This document shows positions 48,486-59,070 of a DNA stretch of 64,000 nt, piece after piece. A model generated the notes under the pieces. It was not told where the DNA came from and searched no databases. It saw only the letters and a program-made list of their open reading frames with translations. The first letter of the stretch is position 1, and each line of letters starts with the position of its first letter. Made by a program: the position numbers and the translations under genes. The stretch is from sequence record OR805292.1, one strand, 5' to 3'.

Positions 48486-48519
48486 AACAAAAAAGGGGCT
48501 TATAAGCCCCTTTTTTGTT
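48486..48519. terminator. Bidirectional terminator
   Basis: aacaaaaaaggggct-tata-agccccttttttgtt. Confidence 0.85.
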
Positions 48520-48573
48520 GACTAGTTTTAACTACTTAAAGCGCTGTAGCATAGCTGTACATAAGCGCTAAAT

Positions 48574-48661
48574 TAGCGCAAATTTGCGTGTTTTTATGCG
48601 TTACAATACATAGCTAATACTACGCATGCAAAACGCGCTATAGCGCAAATTTGCGTGTTTT
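48574..48661. repeat. 21-bp direct repeat (48574-48594, 48641-48661) containing palindrome cgcaaatttgcg
   Basis: tagcgcaaatttgcgtgtttt is identical at both positions. Confidence 0.9.
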
Positions 48662-48755
48662 AAGCACATCTACTATGCTTTTTATTTTGCATTGTATTTA
48701 ATGCACAGGGACAGTATTGTATGCTTGTTTGTGTCATATAAGACAATAAAATGTT

Positions 48756-48998
48756 ATGTTACATTATCTTCCAGTTATACTATTCGTTTATGTTATAGGA
48801 AACATATTATCATTGTTTTTATACAATGTAGTATCATACAGCACACTATTTCCATATAGTATGTTACACAAACAAAACCACAAGAAAACTCTGTTTCATA
48901 AATTTATAAAAATGTGGTGGTTTTCCTACTTAAACATTATTGTACTCAGTTGTGCTTGCATATATGTAATAGGCAAAAAATATATAAAGAGAATTTGA
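48756..48998 (+). CDS. Small membrane protein
   Basis: 80 aa, two hydrophobic segments. Confidence 0.5.
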   Translation: MLHYLPVILFVYVIGNILSLFLYNVVSYSTLFPYSMLHKQNHKKTLFHKFIKMWWFSYLNIIVLSCACIYVIGKKYIKRI

Positions 48999-49053
48999 AA
49001 TATTATAAAGATTTTATTAAGATTATGATAAATTTAATATAGAACTAATTTAC

Positions 49054-49084
49054 AAAATAAAAGGGCTTAACGCCCTTTTATTTT
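49054..49084. terminator. Bidirectional terminator at the convergent strand switch
   Basis: aaaataaaagggc-ttaac-gcccttttatttt between convergent genes. Confidence 0.85.
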
Positions 49085-49090
49085 AATCAA

Positions 49091-49411
49091 TTATTCTATT
49101 TTTGCATGAATAGTACATAGCATATTGTGATATGCTTCCTGGTATTCAGATTCTAGTTTAATCATATCTAAGTAGATAAAAATAGCCTCTATTTTGCCTA
49201 ACTTAGACAACCGTTCATCTTTTTTGCTCTTAATTAGATTTCCTATAAACTGTCTGTCAAATTTATTAACAGAACCGTTTTCACAAATAACTTCTACATA
49301 ATCTACATAAGAAAGATGTAAATCGTCTAAGCTTATGCTAGGCAGAAATTCTTCTATATCAAACGAAATCCCCTCCTGTTCGGGGAGTTTTTTAAGATAG
49401 ATTTTGGCCAT
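49091..49411 (-). CDS. Hypothetical protein
   Basis: 106 aa, GGAG SD, TAAATA at 49440-49445 on the minus strand. Confidence 0.7.
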   Translation of the reverse strand: MAKIYLKKLPEQEGISFDIEEFLPSISLDDLHLSYVDYVEVICENGSVNKFDRQFIGNLIKSKKDERLSKLGKIEAIFIYLDMIKLESEYQEAYHNMLCTIHAKIE

Positions 49412-49546
49412 ATATGCTACTCCGTTCTATGCATATAGATATTTAGCAATTATACAAAAATGCATAGTTTTAATAGCACACACAAACACGATGCAGCGTA
49501 TTAGTTAGTTTTATTACCAAGCAAAATTGTGCATTTTTTGCCCAAA

Positions 49547-49572
49547 AAAACAGCCCTAGCTAGGGCTGTTTT
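49547..49572. terminator. 26-bp perfect palindrome terminator
   Basis: aaaacagccctagctagggctgtttt. Confidence 0.8.
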
Positions 49573-49577
49573 GTTAG

Positions 49578-49817
49578 TTAAAGCTTTTCTAAAACAAGTG
49601 TTAGCGCATCTTCTCCTATATTAAAGTGTTGTGTTGCACTAACATGACAAAACTTGCCATATATATCTAATGCAGATATTACAACATCTTCAATAACTTT
49701 TTCTATCATTTCACTAGTATCTTTACATCTACATTTTAGTGTAATGTTATCCATAGTTTCTTCAATGGATATAATATTAATGCCCTTTACTTCTAAAGCT
49801 TCTTTTATTTCTTGCAT
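49578..49817 (-). CDS. Hypothetical protein
   Basis: ATG 49817 sits 1 nt after the upstream TAA (track start 49847). Confidence 0.65.
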   Translation of the reverse strand: MQEIKEALEVKGINIISIEETMDNITLKCRCKDTSEMIEKVIEDVVISALDIYGKFCHVSATQHFNIGEDALTLVLEKL

Positions 49818-49818
49818 T

Positions 49819-50559
49819 TTACTCCGCGCGAGTGGAATCGCGCTCAAGTTTTTGAGAAACCTTAAGTTCTAATTCCTCGACGGCCTTAGCTTTGCTTTCT
49901 TCTAGTAAAGCTCTAGCCTTTTCTTCTTCTCGTTTCTGCCTAGCTTCCCTGCGCTTTTCCTTACGTTTTTCTAGGCGCTCTTTGTAACGTTCTTCTAGTT
50001 CTTCTTCTGTAAGTTCACGCTGACGACCAGGCGCTGGTTTTAGTTCAGGACATAAAGAATATGCAAGCTCTAACTTTGCATCAGCCTCTTCTTTAAGCAA
50101 CCGTGCTTGAACTATAAGACCTTCTGCTCGTTGTTTATCAGTAATAGATTCTTCAACTACAGGTACTGATGCAGTTTCTGTATGTACAGGGTCGGCACCT
50201 GCTAATGCAGCTTCACGTATCTGAGAATTAATAAGTTCTAAAGCAACATTAGTACCTGGGTACGGTTGCATAAAAACCTGTCTAACTTCCACTTTGCGTA
50301 AAAAAGACCGATCGTGCATTGTACGAAGTGCAGGCAATCCGTCACCTAAAAGTTTATTATTCAGGACAGTATACAAATCGACAGAATTTTGTCCTTCTCT
50401 ACTTTCAACTATAGTTTTTAGGTTATCTTGGTACATGTCTGGTAGTCTATCTATTTCAACTACTAAACAATGAGTAGGATCATCGGGTAATTCCCGGAAC
50501 ACGACATACACACGTGTTCCAGTATTAGCGATTTTCCCTATGTGGCGCTTAAGACTCAT
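49819..50559 (-). CDS. Conserved phage hypothetical protein with charged coiled-coil tail
   Basis: 246 aa; KRHIGK...VVFRELP...HCLVV N-terminus. Confidence 0.8.
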   Translation of the reverse strand: MSLKRHIGKIANTGTRVYVVFRELPDDPTHCLVVEIDRLPDMYQDNLKTIVESREGQNSVDLYTVLNNKLLGDGLPALRTMHDRSFLRKVEVRQVFMQPYPGTNVALELINSQIREAALAGADPVHTETASVPVVEESITDKQRAEGLIVQARLLKEEADAKLELAYSLCPELKPAPGRQRELTEEELEERYKERLEKRKEKRREARQKREEEKARALLEESKAKAVEELELKVSQKLERDSTRAE

Positions 50560-50576
50560 TAGGAAATCTCCGTGTA

Positions 50577-50849
50577 TTATTTGGCTTCAGTTTCAGCTTC
50601 TTGCTCTTCTTGTTTAGGTTCAATTGCTGATACAAAAGATTTAACTTTACTAAACACACCACCGACGCTGGCCATTTCTTCTGCGCGGAATGCTCCGCGT
50701 TGGCATGCAACATCAACTATGGTTAGTAAATCTTTAATGTCTTGTACACCTAGACGAGGTTCTTCGCTTGCTTGTTCAGTCATATTCTCTTGATCTACAA
50801 CTTCTTTTTCTACAACTTCTTTTTCTACAGCTTTAGCTTTCTTAGCCAT
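50577..50849 (-). CDS. Conserved phage hypothetical protein
   Basis: 90 aa; IVDVACQRGAFRAEEMASVG. Confidence 0.78.
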   Translation of the reverse strand: MAKKAKAVEKEVVEKEVVDQENMTEQASEEPRLGVQDIKDLLTIVDVACQRGAFRAEEMASVGGVFSKVKSFVSAIEPKQEEQEAETEAK

Positions 50850-51444
50850 TTAACATTTCTCCGTAATTGTGTGTCGGGCTCGATTCAATTTCTGATATAC
50901 ATTTTTTATCAGTAATAATTATTAAGTTTGAATCCCATGGCAAATAAAATTTCCAATCACTATCTCTTATTAAAATAGGTAATTGTTGCCTACGAGAAAC
51001 AAGTTCATAATAAGTAGGTCTATGTGGCATTTTAATGGGAATAATATTCTTGTTATCGCCTTTTTTGTTATTACAAACTTTACATGCAGTGCATATATTA
51101 GTCCAATTTGTCTTACCACCGTATCTCTTAGGTAAAACATGATCTAGTGTTAGCTGTTTAACAGGAAACGTTCTAAAACAAAACTGACACTGATAGTTAT
51201 CCCTTAAATATACGTTGTTTCTGGAAAACTTTGTTTTATGATTCCATTTAATGTATTCAGTTGACATTACAATAGATGGAACCTTCATAGTAATACTGGG
51301 AGAATTAACTTCCCAATTGTCGTAATTTTTTAAAATTTCGACCTTGCCAAGCGATACTAATTTAATACTAGTTTGCCAGTCTACAACAGATAATGGTAAC
51401 ATGCATAACGGATTACCGTCTTTGTTAAGTATCAAAGTATCCAT
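50842..51444 (-). CDS. HNH endonuclease (McrA-like)
   Basis: RDNYQCQFC...LTLDHVLP...GGKTNWTNICTACKVCNNKKG; agaTAAATA at 51461-51466. Confidence 0.92.
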   Translation of the reverse strand: MDTLILNKDGNPLCMLPLSVVDWQTSIKLVSLGKVEILKNYDNWEVNSPSITMKVPSIVMSTEYIKWNHKTKFSRNNVYLRDNYQCQFCFRTFPVKQLTLDHVLPKRYGGKTNWTNICTACKVCNNKKGDNKNIIPIKMPHRPTYYELVSRRQQLPILIRDSDWKFYLPWDSNLIIITDKKCISEIESSPTHNYGEMLNG

Positions 51445-51471
51445 TTATAAACTACACAGTTATTTATCTTT

Positions 51472-51714
51472 TTATTTCATGTATTTCTTTAATTCTTCCG
51501 GAAAACCTTTTAATGTTACAAACACTTGATCTTCCTGTTTTTCGAAATCAATGTTATAAAAAATTTCATTTTTTGTAGGTTGTATTTCTTCTAAAATAGT
51601 ATACTTTCCATCACAATTAGAGTCTAGCCATACACCTAAGTAAAGCTTAAATACCTCTCCTAACCCGTTAGCAGATCGTTGTACACTAAACCTAGTCATA
51701 TTAACAAAATCCAC
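51472..51714 (-). CDS. Hypothetical protein
   Basis: 80 aa, overlaps the upstream gene. Confidence 0.6.
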   Translation of the reverse strand: MDFVNMTRFSVQRSANGLGEVFKLYLGVWLDSNCDGKYTILEEIQPTKNEIFYNIDFEKQEDQVFVTLKGFPEELKKYMK

Positions 51715-51949
51715 TTAATATTCCCGGGTCTACATATTGTGAAAAGTATACAGTAGATCTACTATCTTGTATTTTTATATACCAAGGATATTTTATATTG
51801 GTACTAATAACTGTAATGAGTTTTTCTACTTCATCCTTAGAAATATGGACTACATATTTGTTATAAAGTAAATTAGAATATAGAGTAGTGCCTTTTAATG
51901 AATAAAATTCGTCTTCTGTTAATCTATATTCCCGTGTGACAGAAATCAT
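51701..51949 (-). CDS. Hypothetical protein
   Basis: 82 aa, GGAG SD. Confidence 0.65.
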   Translation of the reverse strand: MISVTREYRLTEDEFYSLKGTTLYSNLLYNKYVVHISKDEVEKLITVISTNIKYPWYIKIQDSRSTVYFSQYVDPGILSGFC

Positions 51950-52033
51950 ATACGTTTCTCCTTTTATTAAAGTATTTATCTACGTATATATTTCCTAAGA
52001 AGGGAAATAACGCCTTCCCTAGCTAGTGTGCAT

Positions 52034-52062
52034 ATTATATAACAGCATATTACCGTTGTCAA
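52034..52062 (-). promoter_or_regulatory. Perfect-consensus sigma70 promoter
   Basis: TTGACA-17 nt-TATAAT on the minus strand. Confidence 0.9.
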
Positions 52063-52069
52063 TATATTT

Positions 52070-52495
52070 TTAACTAGTCTTTGTCAGAAGGTAAGTATGT
52101 TCATTATTGGTATTTTTGTTTGACTGTATTGTGTAACCATATTGAGTAGCCATTTTTGTTGCGAGTCTATTGTATAATTTAACTCTAGATGGCTCAGATA
52201 GATCGGCAGTAAAATATATTTGGTTAGGTTTTAATTCAGAAATAGCACGTTTGGTAATATCTAATATAGTAGAGAATACTTTAAATTCATTGCCAGTTCC
52301 GGTGACCGCAGCATCATAATAATAATCGTCAACATCAACTTCCTTTGCAGTAAACGATATTAATAGTCTTCCATTAACCATAGTTTCTATGACTCTATAT
52401 TTCATATTACCAACAATAAAATATGCATTAACGGTTCCATTAGTGTTGGTATACTGATATTTTTCAATCTGATCGAATAGTTCAAATAAGTGCAT
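52070..52495 (-). CDS. Hypothetical protein, possible head-packaged internal protein
   Basis: 141 aa; MHLFELFD N-terminus; TGTGNEFKVFSTI...IYFTA...RVKLYNRL; late motif agaTAAATA at 52518-52523. Confidence 0.7.
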   Translation of the reverse strand: MHLFELFDQIEKYQYTNTNGTVNAYFIVGNMKYRVIETMVNGRLLISFTAKEVDVDDYYYDAAVTGTGNEFKVFSTILDITKRAISELKPNQIYFTADLSEPSRVKLYNRLATKMATQYGYTIQSNKNTNNEHTYLLTKTS

Positions 52496-52539
52496 AAAAA
52501 ATAGTCCTTAATATGGATATTTATCTTATATATAAATTA

Positions 52540-52562
52540 AAAGGGGAATTAAATTCCCCTTT
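52540..52562. terminator. Intrinsic terminator (near-perfect palindrome)
   Basis: aaaggggaatt-a-aattccccttt. Confidence 0.75.
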
Positions 52563-52566
52563 ATCA

Positions 52567-53313
52567 TTACTTACCTTTTCTTACCAAAATTGACATACAA
52601 TGTGCTAATTCGTCATAGTAATTTGGAAATAATTGCTTTACTTTTTTATGAAAACTCATAGGCATTGTTTTATTTTTATCTGCTATATAGTAATATTCGG
52701 GATCAACTTTCATTAATCTAATAGCATCAGTGCCAGTTAATTGCATTTTATTTAATAATGTTTCAGTTTCCCTAGATTTAGGCAATTTATTATTACATAT
52801 TTCAGAAATTACAAGGCAAGGTTTAATGTTATCTATATTGTTATTTGCTATAAATTCGATAAATTTTGTTCTAAACGAAATTTTAAATAAATGCTCAGGA
52901 ATAGGTGTATTATATACTATTGAGTTTAAATCTAAATCTGTTAATATTTTTGCCATACGTTTTATACCGTCTTTAGAATTATAATAAATTACACGATAGT
53001 ATGGAGTATTATGCCAGACTTGCATATACTTCATTAACACTTTAGGATGAATACTAACAATAGTTTTTAACCGCTCGGTTGGAATAACATCGCCGAATGT
53101 GTGTATGTGTCTAGCAACAAACTTGTCTGACATTTTAGAAACTAATCTAGTTTTTGATGCTGTAGATGCATCTACAGCAGCATGATACAGTAACTCGTCG
53201 TCATTAGAATAATTATTCTCTATTAGTTTTATGATGTTATGTTTTTTGCAATTGTACGTATTTAATAAGATTTCTTTCAAATCTTCTCTTTCTATATAAA
53301 TTTTGTCATTCAT
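52567..53313 (-). CDS. Helical hypothetical protein (paralog trio, member 3)
   Basis: 248 aa; ends KQLFPNYYDEL...ILVRKGK. Confidence 0.7.
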   Translation of the reverse strand: MNDKIYIEREDLKEILLNTYNCKKHNIIKLIENNYSNDDELLYHAAVDASTASKTRLVSKMSDKFVARHIHTFGDVIPTERLKTIVSIHPKVLMKYMQVWHNTPYYRVIYYNSKDGIKRMAKILTDLDLNSIVYNTPIPEHLFKISFRTKFIEFIANNNIDNIKPCLVISEICNNKLPKSRETETLLNKMQLTGTDAIRLMKVDPEYYYIADKNKTMPMSFHKKVKQLFPNYYDELAHCMSILVRKGK

Positions 53314-54265
53314 TTGTTTTTCTTTTTCCTTTGCCTGTAGATAAAATATACATAAAATATTCTTCGTTATTTTTTAATTCAGGATACATCTTAAACATTT
53401 CTGACCAACTAGTTTTTGTTAATTTTTCGAGATGCTTAGGTACTATAGGCTTAAAGGTTGTTGTATATTTCTTAGCAAATGCCACTAAGTTAGCACCTGT
53501 AAACGGAGTGCCGTGTACAAATTCTTTAGAAGAAAGTTCATCCGATATATCGTTTTCGTTAATTTCAAAAAAGTTAACAATATTGTATACATCAGATTTA
53601 GAAATGTACCTATTTTTTATTATATCGTTTTTTATTGTATCTAAAGTAAATATTTGCTTAAGATCGTTTACTGTATCTAAAGCATATTTAGGACACAATT
53701 TATTAGACTTATTAAAGTCAGATACTGTATGTTTAATTGCTGGCGGCAAATGGTAATAATACGAAAATGAATTATAAGTAAATACGAGATTTGCCATACT
53801 ACACAGACGTTTAATATGTTTATCTATTACATTGGCATATAATTTATCATAATTTTTATATGTTTTTAAATTATGTAAATCAGACATATGTATTTTATTT
53901 AAACACAGCATCAATGGAATACAGTCACTGTATCTAGCTGCCACATTATTTACAATAGGTTTACTGTTGAATTTAGATTTAAACTCATTAATTATTTTTT
54001 CATTAAACAAAATAGTAATGTCTTTTATAAGAAATTCATGCAATGCTCTGCATAACCCATCAAACTGTGTACTATTCTTAAATGCATAAAGACTAGTAGA
54101 TAAATTATCATTGTTAAAAAACGATGATAATGCATAGTGTGCATCTGATGAATGTTCTAACGGTATGTCATATCTAATAGAACTTTCTAATATATATTCT
54201 ATATCGTTTCGTTCTACCGAATTCCAGTCAATTTGTGATAACATGTGTGATACTGATTTTTTCAT
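53306..54265 (-). CDS. Helical hypothetical protein (paralog trio, member 2)
   Basis: 319 aa; ends WSEMFKMYPEL...ILSTGKGK. Confidence 0.72.
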   Translation of the reverse strand: MKKSVSHMLSQIDWNSVERNDIEYILESSIRYDIPLEHSSDAHYALSSFFNNDNLSTSLYAFKNSTQFDGLCRALHEFLIKDITILFNEKIINEFKSKFNSKPIVNNVAARYSDCIPLMLCLNKIHMSDLHNLKTYKNYDKLYANVIDKHIKRLCSMANLVFTYNSFSYYYHLPPAIKHTVSDFNKSNKLCPKYALDTVNDLKQIFTLDTIKNDIIKNRYISKSDVYNIVNFFEINENDISDELSSKEFVHGTPFTGANLVAFAKKYTTTFKPIVPKHLEKLTKTSWSEMFKMYPELKNNEEYFMYILSTGKGKRKTNE

Positions 54266-55158
54266 TAGTTTCGGGGACCTTTAAGTTTTGCTAGTACATG
54301 TTGTTCTGACCCAGCCAAATGAGGGAAGATCTTTATAAGTTTGTTCCAGTACGAATACGGCAAAAAATCGAGATTTATATGATCTAAATATTTTATAGAA
54401 TTACTATGCAACACATTCCTCGAAAATATAGTCAATATATGTCGTCCTGCTATATAAGACCAATCTATATTTTTAAGAAATTTAATACAACTATCAGTAG
54501 ACATTGTCTGACCATTTGCTTTATGCATATAGAATAGCGAAGACATCCTTTCAAAAAGAAACCAGTGATATTGTTTATTTTTAGAAATAGTATCAAACCC
54601 TACAAATTTTACATATTCTTCAAAAACAGAATATCTTTTACTACAAAAAAAATTAAATACTCTTTTATTCAACAAAACGTTATGTCGTTTTAATTCTTTT
54701 AAAATAAGTCTTACTATGTTTAAATCAGGTAAAGATTGTATGGTACACAATTGCGTTATTATATCTTTAGATAATGCTTTTCTCGGTTTTAAATTCTTTA
54801 AAACAACATAAAATAATTTATGACATGTTATAGGAACTTTCATAGGAAACATTGAATTTGAAAATTTTCCAATACATTGCCTGACAAGATATAAATCTTC
54901 TTTACTTATAGATCTGTTATATTCACTAATAGAAGATGAATAATTACTTGATATAAAGTTTATTAATTTTGGACTTTTAATTTCCATAAGAACATTCAAT
55001 ACAGTAGCATTGAACGGTATATATTCAACATCAATAGAATTACAGACTGCAATTAGTGCATCTTTAGCTGAATTATTAGCAATTGTTATTTCTTTATTTT
55101 TTCTAAATTTAATAAAATATTCTAATTCGCTTAAAGCTTTAATATAGCTAATATCCAT
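54265..55158 (-). CDS. Helical hypothetical protein (paralog trio, member 1)
   Basis: 297 aa; ends WNKLIKIFPHL...LAKLKG. Confidence 0.72.
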   Translation of the reverse strand: MDISYIKALSELEYFIKFRKNKEITIANNSAKDALIAVCNSIDVEYIPFNATVLNVLMEIKSPKLINFISSNYSSSISEYNRSISKEDLYLVRQCIGKFSNSMFPMKVPITCHKLFYVVLKNLKPRKALSKDIITQLCTIQSLPDLNIVRLILKELKRHNVLLNKRVFNFFCSKRYSVFEEYVKFVGFDTISKNKQYHWFLFERMSSLFYMHKANGQTMSTDSCIKFLKNIDWSYIAGRHILTIFSRNVLHSNSIKYLDHINLDFLPYSYWNKLIKIFPHLAGSEQHVLAKLKGPRN

Positions 55159-55184
55159 ACGTATACCGTAAAAATTTTTACCAT

Positions 55185-55213
55185 ACTATAAAATATGTAT
55201 ATTCAATAGTCAA
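55185..55213 (-). promoter_or_regulatory. sigma70-type promoter, leftward
   Basis: TTGACT-17 nt-TATAGT. Confidence 0.75.
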
Positions 55214-55247
55214 CTGTGTTTGGTAACAAAATGTGGTAATTAGGCAC

Positions 55248-55276
55248 TTGACAGTGGCATTGTCTTTTAGTAAACT
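55248..55276 (+). promoter_or_regulatory. sigma70-type promoter, rightward, reading into the ORF-free region
   Basis: TTGACA-17 nt-TAAACT. Confidence 0.75.
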
Positions 55277-55282
55277 GTGCGC

Positions 55283-55895
55283 TTGCGTAAGAAATGTATA
55301 TACGATAGTGCTATATGTATATACAGACAAGTGGCTCTGTTCCGTTATTGGATATTGGTAGTAGAAACTATCCCCATCGTGCTGTTATTGTAGTTCCGAT
55401 AGTGTCGGGTTAACGTTTTAACAGTTATTTAAATTATGATTTTGGGTGCCACAGAGATTGTACTTACTAAAAGGACTTAGTAAGAACCGCATATAATCTC
55501 GAAACTTGTGTAGGATGTTGGTCTAACCACGGCATAGAATATATGCCTCAACTACTACACGGAAAGGATGATGCTCTGGTTGAAACAGAGTTTCTATAAA
55601 TCTTTCAGTATAGATTCCGCATGACTGAAAGTTGAAACACCAACATCAATAGACTATAGTTTTTGTTAGTGTGGCTATGGTTTATTCCGGCATTGAAAGT
55701 ATATGCAGTGATGCGAGACAGTAAGCATTAGTAGCAACTGTATATATGAGTAAGAGGATGCGTTTACAATGAGGAATTACCTATCGGTGCCCGCCTCAGG
55801 GATTGCACTTCCCAACGTACACTAAACTTCGTACCATACCGAAACATACGTTTCTGTTATTACGATTTCCTTCCCGAACGGGGAGGAAATCTTCT
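55283..55895 (+). ncRNA. Candidate large structured non-coding RNA (~610 nt), family unknown
   Basis: No ORF of 60 aa or more; more GC-rich than the adjacent right-hand tract; about ten stems of 5-12 bp and a possible pseudoknot; own promoter; 12-bp terminal hairpin. Confidence 0.6.
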
Positions 55896-55953
55896 CCGCC
55901 CGAATGTCATAAGATCAAAAGCATTAATAATTAATACATAAAATTCGTTTAAT

Positions 55954-56290
55954 TAGTTATTAAGTATATGAGTTGTAGTTTACGAAAACGAATATACTTA
56001 ATAACTACCAGTGAAGCTTGCTTCGCTGTTTAAAATTGCAATTTGTATTTTCAATTTTATATTTTGAAATGTGTTTTTGAAAATCAATCTATAAAATATA
56101 ATTTTAAATATTATTTTTAAATGTCATTTTGTGATTTTAATTTAAAATACTATTTCATGATTTAAAATGGAAATATATTAAACAATATCATTTTGTGATT
56201 TTAATTTAAACAATTTCATATAAAACTATTTTGTCTATTTCTTATATAATCTTAAAGTCATTAAAAACCCTACAAATGTAGGGTTTTTAT
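55954..56290. other. Candidate replication origin / AT-rich repeat tract
   Basis: 16-bp inverted repeat (55954-55969/55992-56007), 23-bp direct repeat (56124-56146, 56188-56210), ~12% GC in a sampled 60-mer, located at the divergent strand switch. Confidence 0.4.
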
Positions 56291-56776
56291 TTGATTATAT
56301 GGTATTCGGTTCTAGATATTCAGATTATAATTAATAACATCTGTATGATAACTATATTTTATAGAAATACATTTACTAATTACATTTGTCAATAAATGGT
56401 TATTTTTCTTTATATCTAATACGTCTTAGGAGTATATAGCAAATATAATAAATCGAGACACATAATATTTGTGTCTATATTTTTTAGTTTCATTACTCTA
56501 CATAATTGATTATTAATGTATACAGTTGTATACGCTATATTGTAATAACAAACTAAATTATATAGAGAATACATATTAAATTCTGTTTTGTGTCGAATCG
56601 ACATTACATATATCATTATGTATTGATATTTGCTGTATATAAAAATAGTTAATTATTATGTGCTTTAGAAGAACTCCATTATAATTAGTTTTCTGTGTCA
56701 TATTCAAATGATGAAAAACATAATTCTTTCATCTGTTTTATTATATGTTATTCAAGATTTATAATATAATTTTATA

Positions 56777-56974
56777 ATGTTTGCAATTTATGACACAAGC
56801 TATTTTAATAGAATTATACTATTCAAAGTTTTGACTTATTTTATGTGTAAAACGACAAAAATAGGCATATATATAAAAAGCACACCTGTTTCCTGTATGA
56901 AACAAAATAGTATTTTATTAAAAATAGTGTATAGTAGTAAAAACATCATTAATCATGCACGTACTTTATGGTAA
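56777..56974 (+). CDS. Possible hypothetical protein
   Basis: 65 aa, overlaps the next start, no clear SD. Confidence 0.3.
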   Translation: MFAIYDTSYFNRIILFKVLTYFMCKTTKIGIYIKSTPVSCMKQNSILLKIVYSSKNIINHARTLW

Positions 56975-57189
56975 ACGTAATTAAAGAACTTCCGCCCATT
57001 AAAGGATATTGCATAGTTGTGCGTCATCCGGGCGATACTAGATTTAGCTGGGTATCGCTAGACGATCAATATATGTTGGTAGACAATCCGGTAGTTTTAA
57101 ATGATGAATTTGACAATTGTAAAAACGAATGGCCGGATGCTGAAATAAAAATAGTAGAAGTATATATTGTCCCGGAGAAGGTGTTATGA
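56968..57189 (+). CDS. Small hypothetical protein (paralog A)
   Basis: 73 aa, homologous to the next ORF. Confidence 0.75.
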   Translation: MVNVIKELPPIKGYCIVVRHPGDTRFSWVSLDDQYMLVDNPVVLNDEFDNCKNEWPDAEIKIVEVYIVPEKVL

Positions 57190-57404
57190 ATGCTATATCC
57201 AAAATATCTCCGTCTAAATGTTACACTGTCGTAGTTACAGATAATAATTGGAAATCATGCACGTGGATAAATTATAATGATTCTCCGGTTGTAGAATATG
57301 ATATTTCTAAAATATCATCTATATTAGAATCTTGTAAGAAAAAGTTTGGCGATAGTAATGTAAGGGTAATGGAAATACATTTAGTACCGGAAAACTTTTT
57401 ATGA
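57186..57404 (+). CDS. Small hypothetical protein (paralog B)
   Basis: 72 aa, ATGA overlap, homologous to the previous ORF. Confidence 0.75.
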   Translation: MNAISKISPSKCYTVVVTDNNWKSCTWINYNDSPVVEYDISKISSILESCKKKFGDSNVRVMEIHLVPENFL

Positions 57405-57912: not shown

Positions 57913-59070
57913 ATGAGTCAGATGTACGTAACTATCACTAATGGAATGTACCGTAACCAGCAAGTAAACGGCACATTCCTTTTACTTGAAGATGTGAAAG
58001 TTACTGGGTCGGGAAAACGAGTTATTAACGTATTAGGTGCATTGCCGGAATGGTCTCAACATAAATGTAGAGTTACACTCGGCAATGACGCAACAGTACA
58101 ATATTCGAACGAACAAGGAGAGGTTTTAGATTTGCCTAATGTTATACGTCCGTTTGTGGGCGAAAATAATAATAATAATGTTCCTGCATCTAGTCGCGGT
58201 ACAGTGTATGAAGGCACCGCAGTAGAAATTGACTACGAAAAGCAATACCAACAACTAGAATCCGAAAACGATGCAATGAATCGTATCAAACGGACCTTTG
58301 AGATTGTAAATGAACTAACAGAGGCTGCTGCGGCAGGCGAAATCCGTTCTATGATCATCTCCGGTCCTCCCGGAATCGGAAAAAGCTTCGGCGTAGAAGA
58401 AACACTAAACAGGTGTTTCTTGTTGGATAAAATTAAAGATAATAAAGAACCGTTTGAGATCGTAAAGGGCGCTGCAAGTGCAATTGGTGTTTACCAAAAG
58501 CTTTACGAATTTAAAGATAAAGGTAAAATCCTTATTTTCGATGATTGCGACCGCGTACTATTTGACGAAGATAGTCTAAATCTCCTTAAAGGTGCATTAG
58601 ATACTACTAAGCGTAGAACTATTTACTGGCTTAGTGAGTCCCGCGTTTTAAAAGAAAATGATATTCCACCTAAATTCGATTTCGAAGGTAGTGTAATTTT
58701 CCTTACTAACCTTAACTTCGAGGATACAAAGTCCCGAATCGGAAGGCACCTAGAAGCAATTATGTCCCGGTGTCATTATTTAGACATGGAAATTAGTAGT
58801 ACGAGAGACCAGATCCTTCGCATTAAACAAGTTGTGCGCGACGGGATGCTTAGTAAATATGAATTTAATAACGGAGAAGATGAGGAAATCCTAGAATATA
58901 TTATCGATAATCAGAATGATCTGCGAGAACTTAGCTTGCGTATGGTAATTAAAATTGCCGATCTGATTAAATTCAAAAAAGATGGTTGGCGAGAATATGC
59001 AGAGACAACTGTACTAAAACGGAATGCAAAATTCCGGCGGCTGTATAACGAAAAGTACAGTGATATTTAA
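57913..59070 (+). CDS. AAA+ ATPase with N-terminal beta domain
   Basis: Walker A SGPPGIGKS, Walker B LIFDDCD, VIFLTN, AIMSRC and ELSLR; GGAG SD. Confidence 0.85.
   Translation: MSQMYVTITNGMYRNQQVNGTFLLLEDVKVTGSGKRVINVLGALPEWSQHKCRVTLGNDATVQYSNEQGEVLDLPNVIRPFVGENNNNNVPASSRGTVYEGTAVEIDYEKQYQQLESENDAMNRIKRTFEIVNELTEAAAAGEIRSMIISGPPGIGKSFGVEETLNRCFLLDKIKDNKEPFEIVKGAASAIGVYQKLYEFKDKGKILIFDDCDRVLFDEDSLNLLKGALDTTKRRTIYWLSESRVLKENDIPPKFDFEGSVIFLTNLNFEDTKSRIGRHLEAIMSRCHYLDMEISSTRDQILRIKQVVRDGMLSKYEFNNGEDEEILEYIIDNQNDLRELSLRMVIKIADLIKFKKDGWREYAETTVLKRNAKFRRLYNEKYSDI

Follow-up and report, generated by a model that had tools for sequence, protein, structure and literature searches.

The locus described here lies in a window of 64,000 nucleotides from sequence record OR805292.1, the whole stretch of DNA that was analysed, and belongs to Pseudomonas phage Cassandra (OR805292, 100% identity), a relative of PA5oct and Paride among the jumbo phages of the genus Wroclawvirus. 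It carries the Cassandra counterpart of ncRNA004, a transcript annotated in PA5oct, and we hold with high confidence that ncRNA004 is a genuine conserved structured RNA gene. The gene occupies a gap between protein genes: 55159-56415 (1257 nt) is by far the largest part of the window to lack an open reading frame (ORF) of at least 60 amino acids in any frame, the runner-up being 311 nt at the window edge, and the largest ORF within 55283-55900 has 43 amino acids. The G+C content is 36-44.5% across 55200-55900 as compared to 15.5-18% at 56000-56300. A first-pass annotation, made from the letters alone, had proposed a promoter-driven structured RNA in this gap; all three features on which it relied, promoter, ORF-free gap and G+C contrast, are found where it had placed them. 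Window position x corresponds to position x + 62000 of the Cassandra genome. The transcription unit consists of two features:

55248-55276, plus strand: sigma-70-type promoter TTGACA-17-TAAACT, with hexamers at 55248-55253 and 55271-55276
55283-55913, plus strand: non-coding transcript of about 620-630 nt, its start predicted from the promoter and its end taken from the PA5oct annotation

Transcription of the locus was already known. The PA5oct record (MK797984) contains at 246116..246734, plus strand, a feature described as "putative lncRNA; ncRNA004; annotation based on RNA-Seq data". This feature (EST35_0353) maps to 55295-55913 of the window, also on the plus strand, with 98.6% identity over 636 nt, and has the same strand and the same neighbours in both phages. 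Its annotated ends lie within 12 nt of the predicted start at 55283 and 22 nt beyond the terminal hairpin. The RNA was detected by directional RNA-seq in PA5oct-infected PAO1, so that the measurement applies to PA5oct and not to Cassandra; its share of the phage reads was 0.08 early, 0.03 in the middle and 0.02% late in infection (PMC7318152, Table 1). Lood et al. 2020 count it among four transcribed regions in which they saw neither a plausible ORF nor a known promoter, and the parts of that publication dealing with ncRNA004 give coordinates and read shares and report neither structure nor homologues (PMC7318152). A literature search returned no further analysis of this RNA. The transcription predicted by the first-pass annotation is thus confirmed, on the predicted strand, for the PA5oct locus. 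The proposed novelty holds in part: the transcript itself is not new, having been published in 2020 as a low-abundance RNA (PMC7318152), whereas it matches no Rfam family. Structure and conservation were not previously known; the present analysis adds the promoter, the fold, the evidence of constraint, a helix map, a distant homologue and the separation from curated RNA families.

The promoter scores 10 of 12 and is among the best promoter-like sites in 54900-57100, tied with four others, in a scan that as a whole did not rise above chance (21 sites against 17.2 +/- 3.8 in shuffled sequences). Ten other phage records match the locus at 98.3-99.1% and represent nine further PA5oct-like genomes, PA5oct being present twice. 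Cassandra, Deifobo and Ettore, all closely related to Paride, come from isolations on deep-dormant host cultures; Paride itself replicates on deep-dormant P. aeruginosa and has been shown to kill such cells (PMC10761892). Variation within the group was determined from an alignment of 6.6 kb round the locus in ten near-identical genomes. Both promoter hexamers are free of variation, the only variable sites of the element (55254 and 55258) lying in the spacer. The RNA has 17 variable sites in 618 nt (2.75%) and no insertions or deletions, as compared to 3.65-4.8% variable sites in the three upstream genes and the downstream gene for a protein of 385 amino acids, and 8.6-9.1% in two small downstream genes. 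Apart from a short gene of 69 codons and the promoter stretch, it is the least variable part of the neighbourhood, and its sequence appears to be under purifying selection in the PA5oct group, a conclusion that these counts support directly. Nine of the variable sites fall in proposed helices, and seven of these (55358, 55624, 55651, 55705, 55711, 55798 and 55814) keep the pair through a switch between A-U and G-U; the pair is lost at 55509 and 55849.

A search with the AAA protein of 385 amino acids revealed a 65%-identical relative in the Logan assemblies, and among the contigs that carry a member of this protein cluster, the metagenomic contig L017 (5531 bp, SRR32006999) extends 3.8 kb upstream. 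At the syntenic place it has a gene-free gap of 1.08 kb, containing no ORF of at least 60 amino acids and none that matches the short ORFs of the window. BLAST aligned the gap collinearly with window 55327-55382, 55424-55458, 55559-55591, 56075-56138 and 56274-56292. Upstream of the RNA copy, in the same orientation as in the window, lies a consensus promoter TTGACA-18-TATAAT (1230-1259). It is about 30 nt nearer to the conserved core, with some 15 nt between predicted start and core, and the leader hairpin at 55295-55325 is therefore specific to the PA5oct group. The L017 sequence recurs in another contig, L020, with 99.6% identity overall and no difference within the RNA. The window and L017 RNAs share 67% identity over 365 confidently aligned columns, concentrated in blocks, which is close to the 68% DNA identity of the best-conserved neighbouring gene; 55687-55769, where no reliable alignment was obtained, does not enter these counts. 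Fifteen sequence anchors occur in equal order in both RNAs, and blocks of 25-35 nt are nearly unchanged while the neighbouring proteins are 33-65% identical. Between the anchors the sequence has diverged, with hairpins kept at equivalent positions. The conserved elements and helices (labelled P) of the window RNA are the following, where compensatory refers to two-sided changes between the window and L017, and MFE to minimum free energy folding:

55295-55325, plus strand: 5' leader hairpin of the PA5oct group only (55295-303/55317-325), present in the MFE fold
55327-55897, plus strand: conserved RNA core, homologous to L017 1281-1770 by collinear blocks and covariance model matches
55331-335/55448-452, plus strand: long-range helix P1, 5 bp, enclosing P2-P4 and reproduced by covariance model alignment
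55357-362/55367-372, plus strand: hairpin P3 with a conserved AGAA loop, 6 bp, 2 compensatory
55381-55425, plus strand: long hairpin P4, outer stem 55381-386/55420-425, 4 of 6 outer pairs compensatory
55424-55458, plus strand: most conserved block, GUUAUUUAARUUAUGAUUUUGGGUGCCRCAGARAU, 32 of 35 nt identical to L017
55454-462/55492-500, plus strand: P5, 9 bp, 4 of 9 compensatory, stacked on P6, in both MFE folds
55463-470/55477-484, plus strand: P6, 8 bp, 4 of 8 compensatory, in both MFE folds
55506-55562, plus strand: hairpin domain P7, with a conserved core GUAG/CUAC (55510-513/55555-558) and differing inner hairpins
55567-55591, plus strand: invariant block with hairpin P8, GCUCUG-GUNGAAA-CAGAGU, 24 of 25 nt identical to L017
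55602-55631, plus strand: hairpin P9 with a partly conserved 14-nt loop (GAYUC...G); 3 of 6 pairs of 55604-609/55624-629 compensatory
55637-55651, plus strand: conserved block ACRCCAACAUCARUA, 13 of 15 nt identical to L017
55700-55746, plus strand: hairpin of 10 + 5 bp with bulge AGUAGCA, in the MFE fold, supported in the PA5oct group only
55770-774/55794-798, plus strand: P13, enclosing the small hairpin P14, 2 compensatory, recovered by covariance model R3
55799-801/55811-813, plus strand: hairpin P15 of the domain 55770-55813, 2 compensatory, recovered by covariance model R3
55864-55891, plus strand: terminal hairpin P17, 12 bp in the window, the inner 7 bp conserved in L017

In a structure-guided hand alignment, in which the variable stems were aligned by eye, 17 helices with 88 aligned pairs could be compared. 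Sixty pairs are unchanged, 5 differ on one side, 23 are compensatory and none is broken in either lineage. Over the two lineages 13 pairs are G-U, which would be A-C mismatches on the opposite strand and thus favour the plus strand, in agreement with the promoter and with the strand of the RNA-seq annotation. P4 combines a conserved outer stem with an apical part that is specific to each lineage, and it occurs in the independent MFE folds of both. The hexaloop of P6 (55471-55476) reads A(A/U)GGAC and is conserved in both lineages. In the P8 block the sole variable position is the loop base 55581. Among the variants within the PA5oct group, 55358 changes a G-U pair of P3 to A-U and 55624 gives a U-G pair in P9, while 55509 disrupts an outer pair of P7. 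For the hairpin at 55700-55746, which has no reliable L017 alignment, the sole comparative support comes from the variants 55705 and 55711, which remain paired by wobble. The pairings proposed in the first-pass annotation are all complementary in the window and most of them appear in the MFE fold. Those at 55454-462/55492-500, 55463-470/55477-484, 55574-578/55586-590, 55602-609/55624-631 and 55770-774/55794-798, as well as the core of 55508-513/55555-560 and the inner 7 bp of the terminal hairpin, recur in L017, whereas 55295-303/55317-325 and 55841-845/55850-854 are confined to the PA5oct group. The same annotation had remarked that the two 7-nt bulges both end in GCA, and this may reflect a conserved element. 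In L017 the bulge AACCGCA on the 3' side of P5/P6 is replaced by a 27-nt insert (1423-1449) with its own hairpin CUAUC-GCA-GAUAG; the two have CGCA alone in common.

Computed folding and covariance models were used alongside the hand alignment. The plus strand of the window RNA gave folding z scores of -4.84 with 20 dinucleotide shuffles and -4.13 with 60, and the minus strand -2.27 (60 shuffles). The window RNA thus folds better than its shuffles, whereas the L017 RNA folds only slightly better than its shuffles (z = -1.75) and controls of the same length from neighbouring DNA range from -0.5 to -2.7. The thermodynamic signal by itself is moderate, suggestive and not decisive. Independent MFE folds of the window and L017 RNAs share P4, P5, P6, P7, P8, P9 and P17, located between equal conserved blocks. 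Covariance models were built from the PA5oct group only and then searched against L017. Model R1, covering 55327-55500 with the hand structure, matched L017 1281-1429 with 75.9 bits (E = 4.5e-17), and its alignment agrees with the hand alignment for P1-P4 and P6. When the same alignment was modelled without structure (R2), the score on L017 was 37.3 bits, so that structure adds 38.6 bits; the two models are weighted differently and the gain is not a perfect like-for-like figure, although its direction agrees. Model R3 (55765-55900) matched L017 1650-1773 with 34.7 bits (E = 1e-5) and placed P13, P14, P15 and P17 as in the hand alignment. The proposal of a structured RNA, for which homologues and covariation had been named as the check, is therefore upheld by a diverged homologue that retains the helices through two-sided changes and scores about twice as high with structure as without.

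Two long-range pairings of the first-pass annotation fared less well. The 9-bp pairing 55514-522/55639-647, suggested as a pseudoknot or conformational switch, has no counterpart in L017 and is not conserved. The pairing 55448-453/55670-675, suggested to close a multiloop, reads G-C, C-G, C-G, G-U, C-U and A-U in L017, with a mismatch at C-U, and is weaker than P1. On the aligned sequences we prefer P1 as the probable closure of the 5' domain, because its GCCRC strand pairs perfectly in both lineages with GYGGC at 55331-335, including a change from U-A to C-G in L017; this is the single compensatory pair of the helix. A pairing P10 (55437-445/55640-648, UGAUUUUGG/CCAACAUCA, 4+4 bp) could form a pseudoknot across P1, and its strands are invariant in both lineages and thus uninformative for covariation. 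A screen over every alignment column further showed complementarity, in both lineages, between the P9 loop halves and the stretches 55377-382 and 55774-778, with one compensatory pair each; these are weak candidates for tertiary contacts.

Coding potential was considered and rejected. The Cassandra record carries the following calls:

55178-55330 (minus), 55803-55934 (plus), 55998-56087 (minus) and 56291-56395 (plus): short hypothetical coding sequences in and after the RNA

Such short coding sequences are annotated here in Cassandra, Deifobo, Paride, Ettore and PAC2, and are lacking in the records of PA5oct, MIJ3, Callisto, 30-2 and 30-3. In the ORF of 43 amino acids at 55803-55934, four of the five variable sites are at second codon positions and L017 has no counterpart; judged by this pattern, it does not appear to evolve as a protein. 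No ORF is common to the window and L017, and the short ORFs within conserved blocks (MILGA..., MMLW...) were dismissed since neither length nor end is conserved. The calls inside the RNA are most likely spurious in Cassandra and its relatives, and this is a correction to their annotation.

Downstream of the RNA, a set of elements recurs in both lineages. P17 is a strong hairpin, but it is followed by UUCUCCGCC without a U-tract, and the terminator scan called no intrinsic terminator there; the conserved UUCUCC (55892-897) can alternatively pair with the purine arm GGAGGA of P17 (55882-887). Further on follow:

55954-56008, no strand: palindrome with a stem of about 16 bp, directly after the RNA, without a variable site in 10 genomes
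56009-56028, plus strand: hairpin CAGUGAAG-CUUG-CUUCGCUG and then UUUAAAAUU, read from the sequence and not called by the scan
56120-56210, no strand: 27-nt direct repeat in two copies 64 nt apart, in a tract of 15-18% G+C
56262-56289, no strand: strong two-way intrinsic terminator closing the module, the nearest terminator called, with an L017 equivalent at 2094-2158

The hairpin at 56009-56028 is possibly a weak terminator. The palindrome of L017 (1857-1910) is similar in size and different in sequence. The 23-nt core of the direct repeat occurs nowhere else in the window, and within the PA5oct group only 1 of the 54 nt of the two repeats is variable, as compared to 5 in the 37-nt spacer between them. 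L017 has partly conserved counterparts of the two repeat elements, about 66 nt apart, together with short direct repeats of its own. Because palindrome, AT-rich tract and repeat elements follow the RNA in both lineages, the RNA gene and the downstream tract appear from the sequence comparison to be a module that has remained linked through changes in the genes on either side. To the left of the L017 gap lies a gene for 266 amino acids, a 33%-identical homologue of the structural protein of 319 amino acids encoded in the window; it adjoins the RNA promoter, the gene for 297 amino acids that borders the RNA in the window being absent. To the right, after the AT-rich tract, L017 has an additional minus-strand gene for 197 amino acids, so that its module is flanked on both sides by minus-strand genes. 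Beyond the terminator of the window, the spacer 56301-56967 is hypervariable in the ten genomes (14.8% variable sites and several indels, three to five times the rate of genes and RNA), and the annotation of a minus-strand ORF of 66 amino acids within it (56416-56616) differs from genome to genome.

The distribution of the RNA appears narrow in the collections searched. Among GenBank phages it was found only in the ten PA5oct-like genomes, and a search with the 319-amino-acid protein gave its L017 homologue as the sole relative. Pattern scans for the RNA had no match in IMG/VR, where a scan for the AAA protein likewise gave no relative. Scans of JGI metagenomes yielded first no match and then a single chance 24-mer, and the 13 matches in GTDB genomes are about the number expected by chance. 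With nhmmer and both covariance models, no homologue turned up in further jumbo-phage contigs whose AAA gene is 45-50% identical. The DNA of the RNA gene had no match in E. coli genomes and plasmids, and there is thus no obvious sequence tie to conserved host RNAs or plasmid origins. Paralogues within the genome were rejected, as the "3 places per record" reported by BLAST are the region's own palindromes. Two pattern matches, to the two most conserved blocks of the RNA, were inspected: an exact 24-nt match (L019, 181-204) lies inside a bacterial gene that by eye resembles a capsule-type tyrosine kinase, and a 26/28-nt match (L021, 6717-6744) inside an ORF of 529 amino acids that looks citrate-lyase-like. 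Both are chance matches picked by the pattern scans and caution against mining this RNA with short patterns.

With respect to the gene surroundings, the locus is in the window the point where transcription changes strand. A small island of minus-strand genes (48500-55158) interrupts an otherwise plus-strand region and the RNA adjoins its right edge; the island includes two proteins found by mass spectrometry in the PA5oct virion and a homing endonuclease gene (50842-51444). GC skew in the window tracks gene orientation and the strand switch, with no global minimum at the locus. The gene adjoining the RNA (54265-55158, minus strand, 297 amino acids) gave no match beyond the PA5oct group in a search of 5.8 billion proteins. 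On the other side, the AAA protein (57913-59070, plus strand) is labelled "thioredoxin" in PA5oct and PAC2. It possesses a nucleotide-binding motif GPPGIGKS and a faint AAA_16 match, and its relatives, at about 34% identity, occur in 1308 phage records, among them T4-like phages of Acinetobacter, Vibrio, Escherichia and others, some carrying the label "putative processivity clamp loader"; "thioredoxin" appears to be a misannotation. The small plus-strand genes 56968-57189 and 57186-57404 (73 and 72 amino acids) resemble paralogues and both end in ...VxEx(Y/H)(I/L)VPE...; a single counterpart, ending in ...IIEGYFVPERKL, is present in L017 (2977-3288) and L012.

For ncRNA004, plus-strand transcription, the absence of a conserved ORF, purifying selection and a conserved secondary structure are each demonstrated or directly supported. 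The reading that we put first, and to which we give about an even chance, is that ncRNA004 is a stand-alone gene for a folded RNA that acts in trans, putatively as a binding platform. Host RNA polymerase would start transcription near 55283 from the near-consensus sigma-70 promoter, from early infection onward, and the transcript would end, or be trimmed, just beyond the hairpin at 55864-55891. The RNA would adopt a multi-domain fold: a 5' domain closed by P1 around P2-P4, then the stacked P5/P6 arm with its ANGGAC loop, the central hairpins P7-P9 and a 3' domain formed by P13-P17. Folded in this way, it would act in trans, its most probable role being that of a platform to which a phage or host protein binds specifically. 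The strongest conservation lies in loops and joining strands and not in stems alone, and the fold goes far beyond the complexity that a terminator, leader or primer would require.

Several observations weigh against this interpretation. With two lineages only, the covariation is in effect a single pairwise comparison, and the variable stems were aligned with the structure in mind. The all-column screen that produced the P9 loop contacts also gave a conflicting 5-bp pairing with two "compensatory" pairs, and candidates for short helices are weak for that reason. To these are added the modest z score of the L017 RNA and those reached by the control sequences. The RNA is rare, and a share of 0.02-0.08% of the PA5oct phage reads, as tabulated for the non-coding RNAs in PMC7318152, is low for a decoy or sponge. 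No partner of ncRNA004 emerged from the analysis. Finally, the palindrome and the AT-rich repeat tract accompany the RNA in both lineages, and a role in cis is therefore conceivable.

Such a role could be that of an origin-linked transcript that forms an RNA-DNA hybrid within the AT-rich tract and thereby primes leading-strand synthesis or opens the duplex, with the folded 5' part controlling hybrid formation; ColE1 RNA II and the transcripts of the T4 origins oriF and oriG, which do so in their unwinding element, would be analogues. We regard this as the main rival, possible although rather unlikely. The order of elements speaks for it, since the RNA precedes, in both lineages, a palindrome of about 16 bp whose sequence differs, a tract of 15-20% G+C and two elements 64-66 nt apart, and within the PA5oct group the repeats are conserved and the spacer between them is not. 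The module of RNA and tract has also stayed intact although the flanks differ (the 297-amino-acid gene missing and the 197-amino-acid gene added in L017), and in the window it sits at the transcription strand switch. T4 origins consist of a promoter and an AT-rich unwinding element, several of them at points of transcriptional divergence, and oriE has an early promoter and iterons (PMC3016281). In addition, PA5oct encodes an RNase H-like protein (PMC7318152). However, the end of the annotated transcript, at about 55913, leaves some 40 nt to the palindrome and about 120 nt to the AT-rich tract. Loops and joining strands conserved over 500 nt exceed what a primer needs, and minimal T4 origins measure about 100 bp, with a hybrid that does not depend on a specific sequence (PMC3016281). 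The GC skew follows gene orientation, the L017 module lies between minus-strand genes instead of at a divergence point, and by-eye inspection of the repeat and its flanks disclosed no sequence resembling a DnaA box.

A further reading takes ncRNA004 for a new class of large ornate jumbo-phage RNA with a pseudoknotted core, in which the conserved loops and joining strands would build a catalytic site, as in a ribozyme, or enable self-assembly, as in the cage-forming ROOL and GOLLD RNAs, and which would be required for infection by the PA5oct/Paride group. P10 and the contacts of the P9 loop with 55377-382 and 55774-778 are candidate elements of such a core; we consider this reading improbable. 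Still less probable, in our judgement, is a precursor or spacer transcript without a function as a whole, either a by-product of an early promoter or an RNA that is cut into small RNAs, with hairpins that serve only as processing or termination signals. The low read share, the several hairpins and the two terminator-like elements downstream would suit it, and the long palindrome could be a site for RNase III. A by-product is nevertheless difficult to reconcile with an RNA that varies less than the neighbouring genes, with blocks of 25-35 nt that stay nearly unchanged next to proteins of 33-65% identity, and with compensatory changes distributed along the entire length.

Rsm proteins prefer an ANGGAN loop, and the P6 loop fits this preference. 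ncRNA004 could accordingly be imagined as a sponge of the RsmA/CsrA type whose loop GGA motifs titrate the host translational repressor RsmA/RsmN in the manner of Pseudomonas RsmY and RsmZ, since P6, the best-conserved hairpin, presents its A(A/U)GGAC hexaloop in both lineages. We think this very unlikely: GGA is not enriched (10 occurrences against 8.4 +/- 2.5 expected in the window RNA and 7 against 7.6 +/- 2.4 in L017), the P6 motif is the sole one both conserved and in a loop, the other conserved ones lying in the P17 stem or in GGAUAUUG, Rfam gives no match to RsmY, RsmZ or CsrB, and the abundance is low. A decayed protein gene or neutral spacer with fortuitous helices is scarcely credible, for although automatic annotation places short coding sequences in the RNA and control sequences go down to z of about -2.7, the window and L017 have no ORF in common, the 43-amino-acid ORF varies at second codon positions, the stretch is the least variable nearby (with the two exceptions given above), the promoter is kept in both lineages and the structure term is worth 38.6 bits.

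If ncRNA004 acts in trans, it offers an entry to a phage-host interaction in a group that is studied for therapy and for the killing of dormant cells. Should the RNA instead work in cis together with the AT-rich repeat tract, the locus would be a candidate origin for the PA5oct group, for which we found none described, and one primed by an unusually long RNA. The practical assets are a phage that grows on PAO1, a defined promoter, an RNA-seq record and a diverged homologue that marks helices and invariant loops.

Comparison with known RNA classes assigns ncRNA004 to no curated family. Rfam 15 gave no family at the gathering score in the whole 64-kb window and, with permissive filters and E <= 10, nothing inside the RNA of either lineage, only terminator look-alikes downstream. 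ROOL, GOLLD, OLE, raiA, HEARO, group I and II introns, RNase P, tmRNA and 6S RNA are excluded as far as the models see, and ARAGORN found no tRNA or tmRNA in the window. The first-pass annotation, which saw no signature of tRNA, tmRNA, RNase P or a group I core, was right in this respect.

With RsmY, RsmZ and CsrB, ncRNA004 has in common one conserved hairpin with GGA in a hexaloop; it differs from them in having one such site instead of many, no GGA enrichment, a much larger and more intricate fold and no match to their models. The likeness to ColE1 RNA II and to T4 oriF, oriG and oriE consists in a promoter that reads toward an AT-rich tract with repeats. ColE1 RNA II acts about 555 nt from its own promoter, and the length of ncRNA004 is close to this value; unlike the ColE1 system, no promoter for an antisense regulator was seen inside ncRNA004 in the promoter scan. 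The resemblance to oriE lies in the early promoter, as ncRNA004 has a sigma-70 promoter and a higher early read share. The stable transcript of ncRNA004 appears to stop before the AT-rich tract, and the T4 origins differ in their size of about 100 bp and in a hybrid that is not sequence-specific.

To our knowledge, a conserved complex fold is rare among bacterial or phage RNAs of more than about 400 nt, and a function is known for almost none of those that have one. GOLLD and ROOL are large phage-associated RNAs whose function is largely unknown. With ROOL, GOLLD, OLE, raiA and HEARO, ncRNA004 shares a length of 0.5-0.6 kb, many helices, conserved loops and junctions and independent transcription, and it is distinguished from them by the lack of an Rfam match, the absence of tRNA genes nearby and its occurrence in two phage lineages only. 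ROOL and GOLLD form cages, a self-assembly for which ncRNA004 gives no evidence. We file ncRNA004 with the large structured phage RNAs of unknown function.

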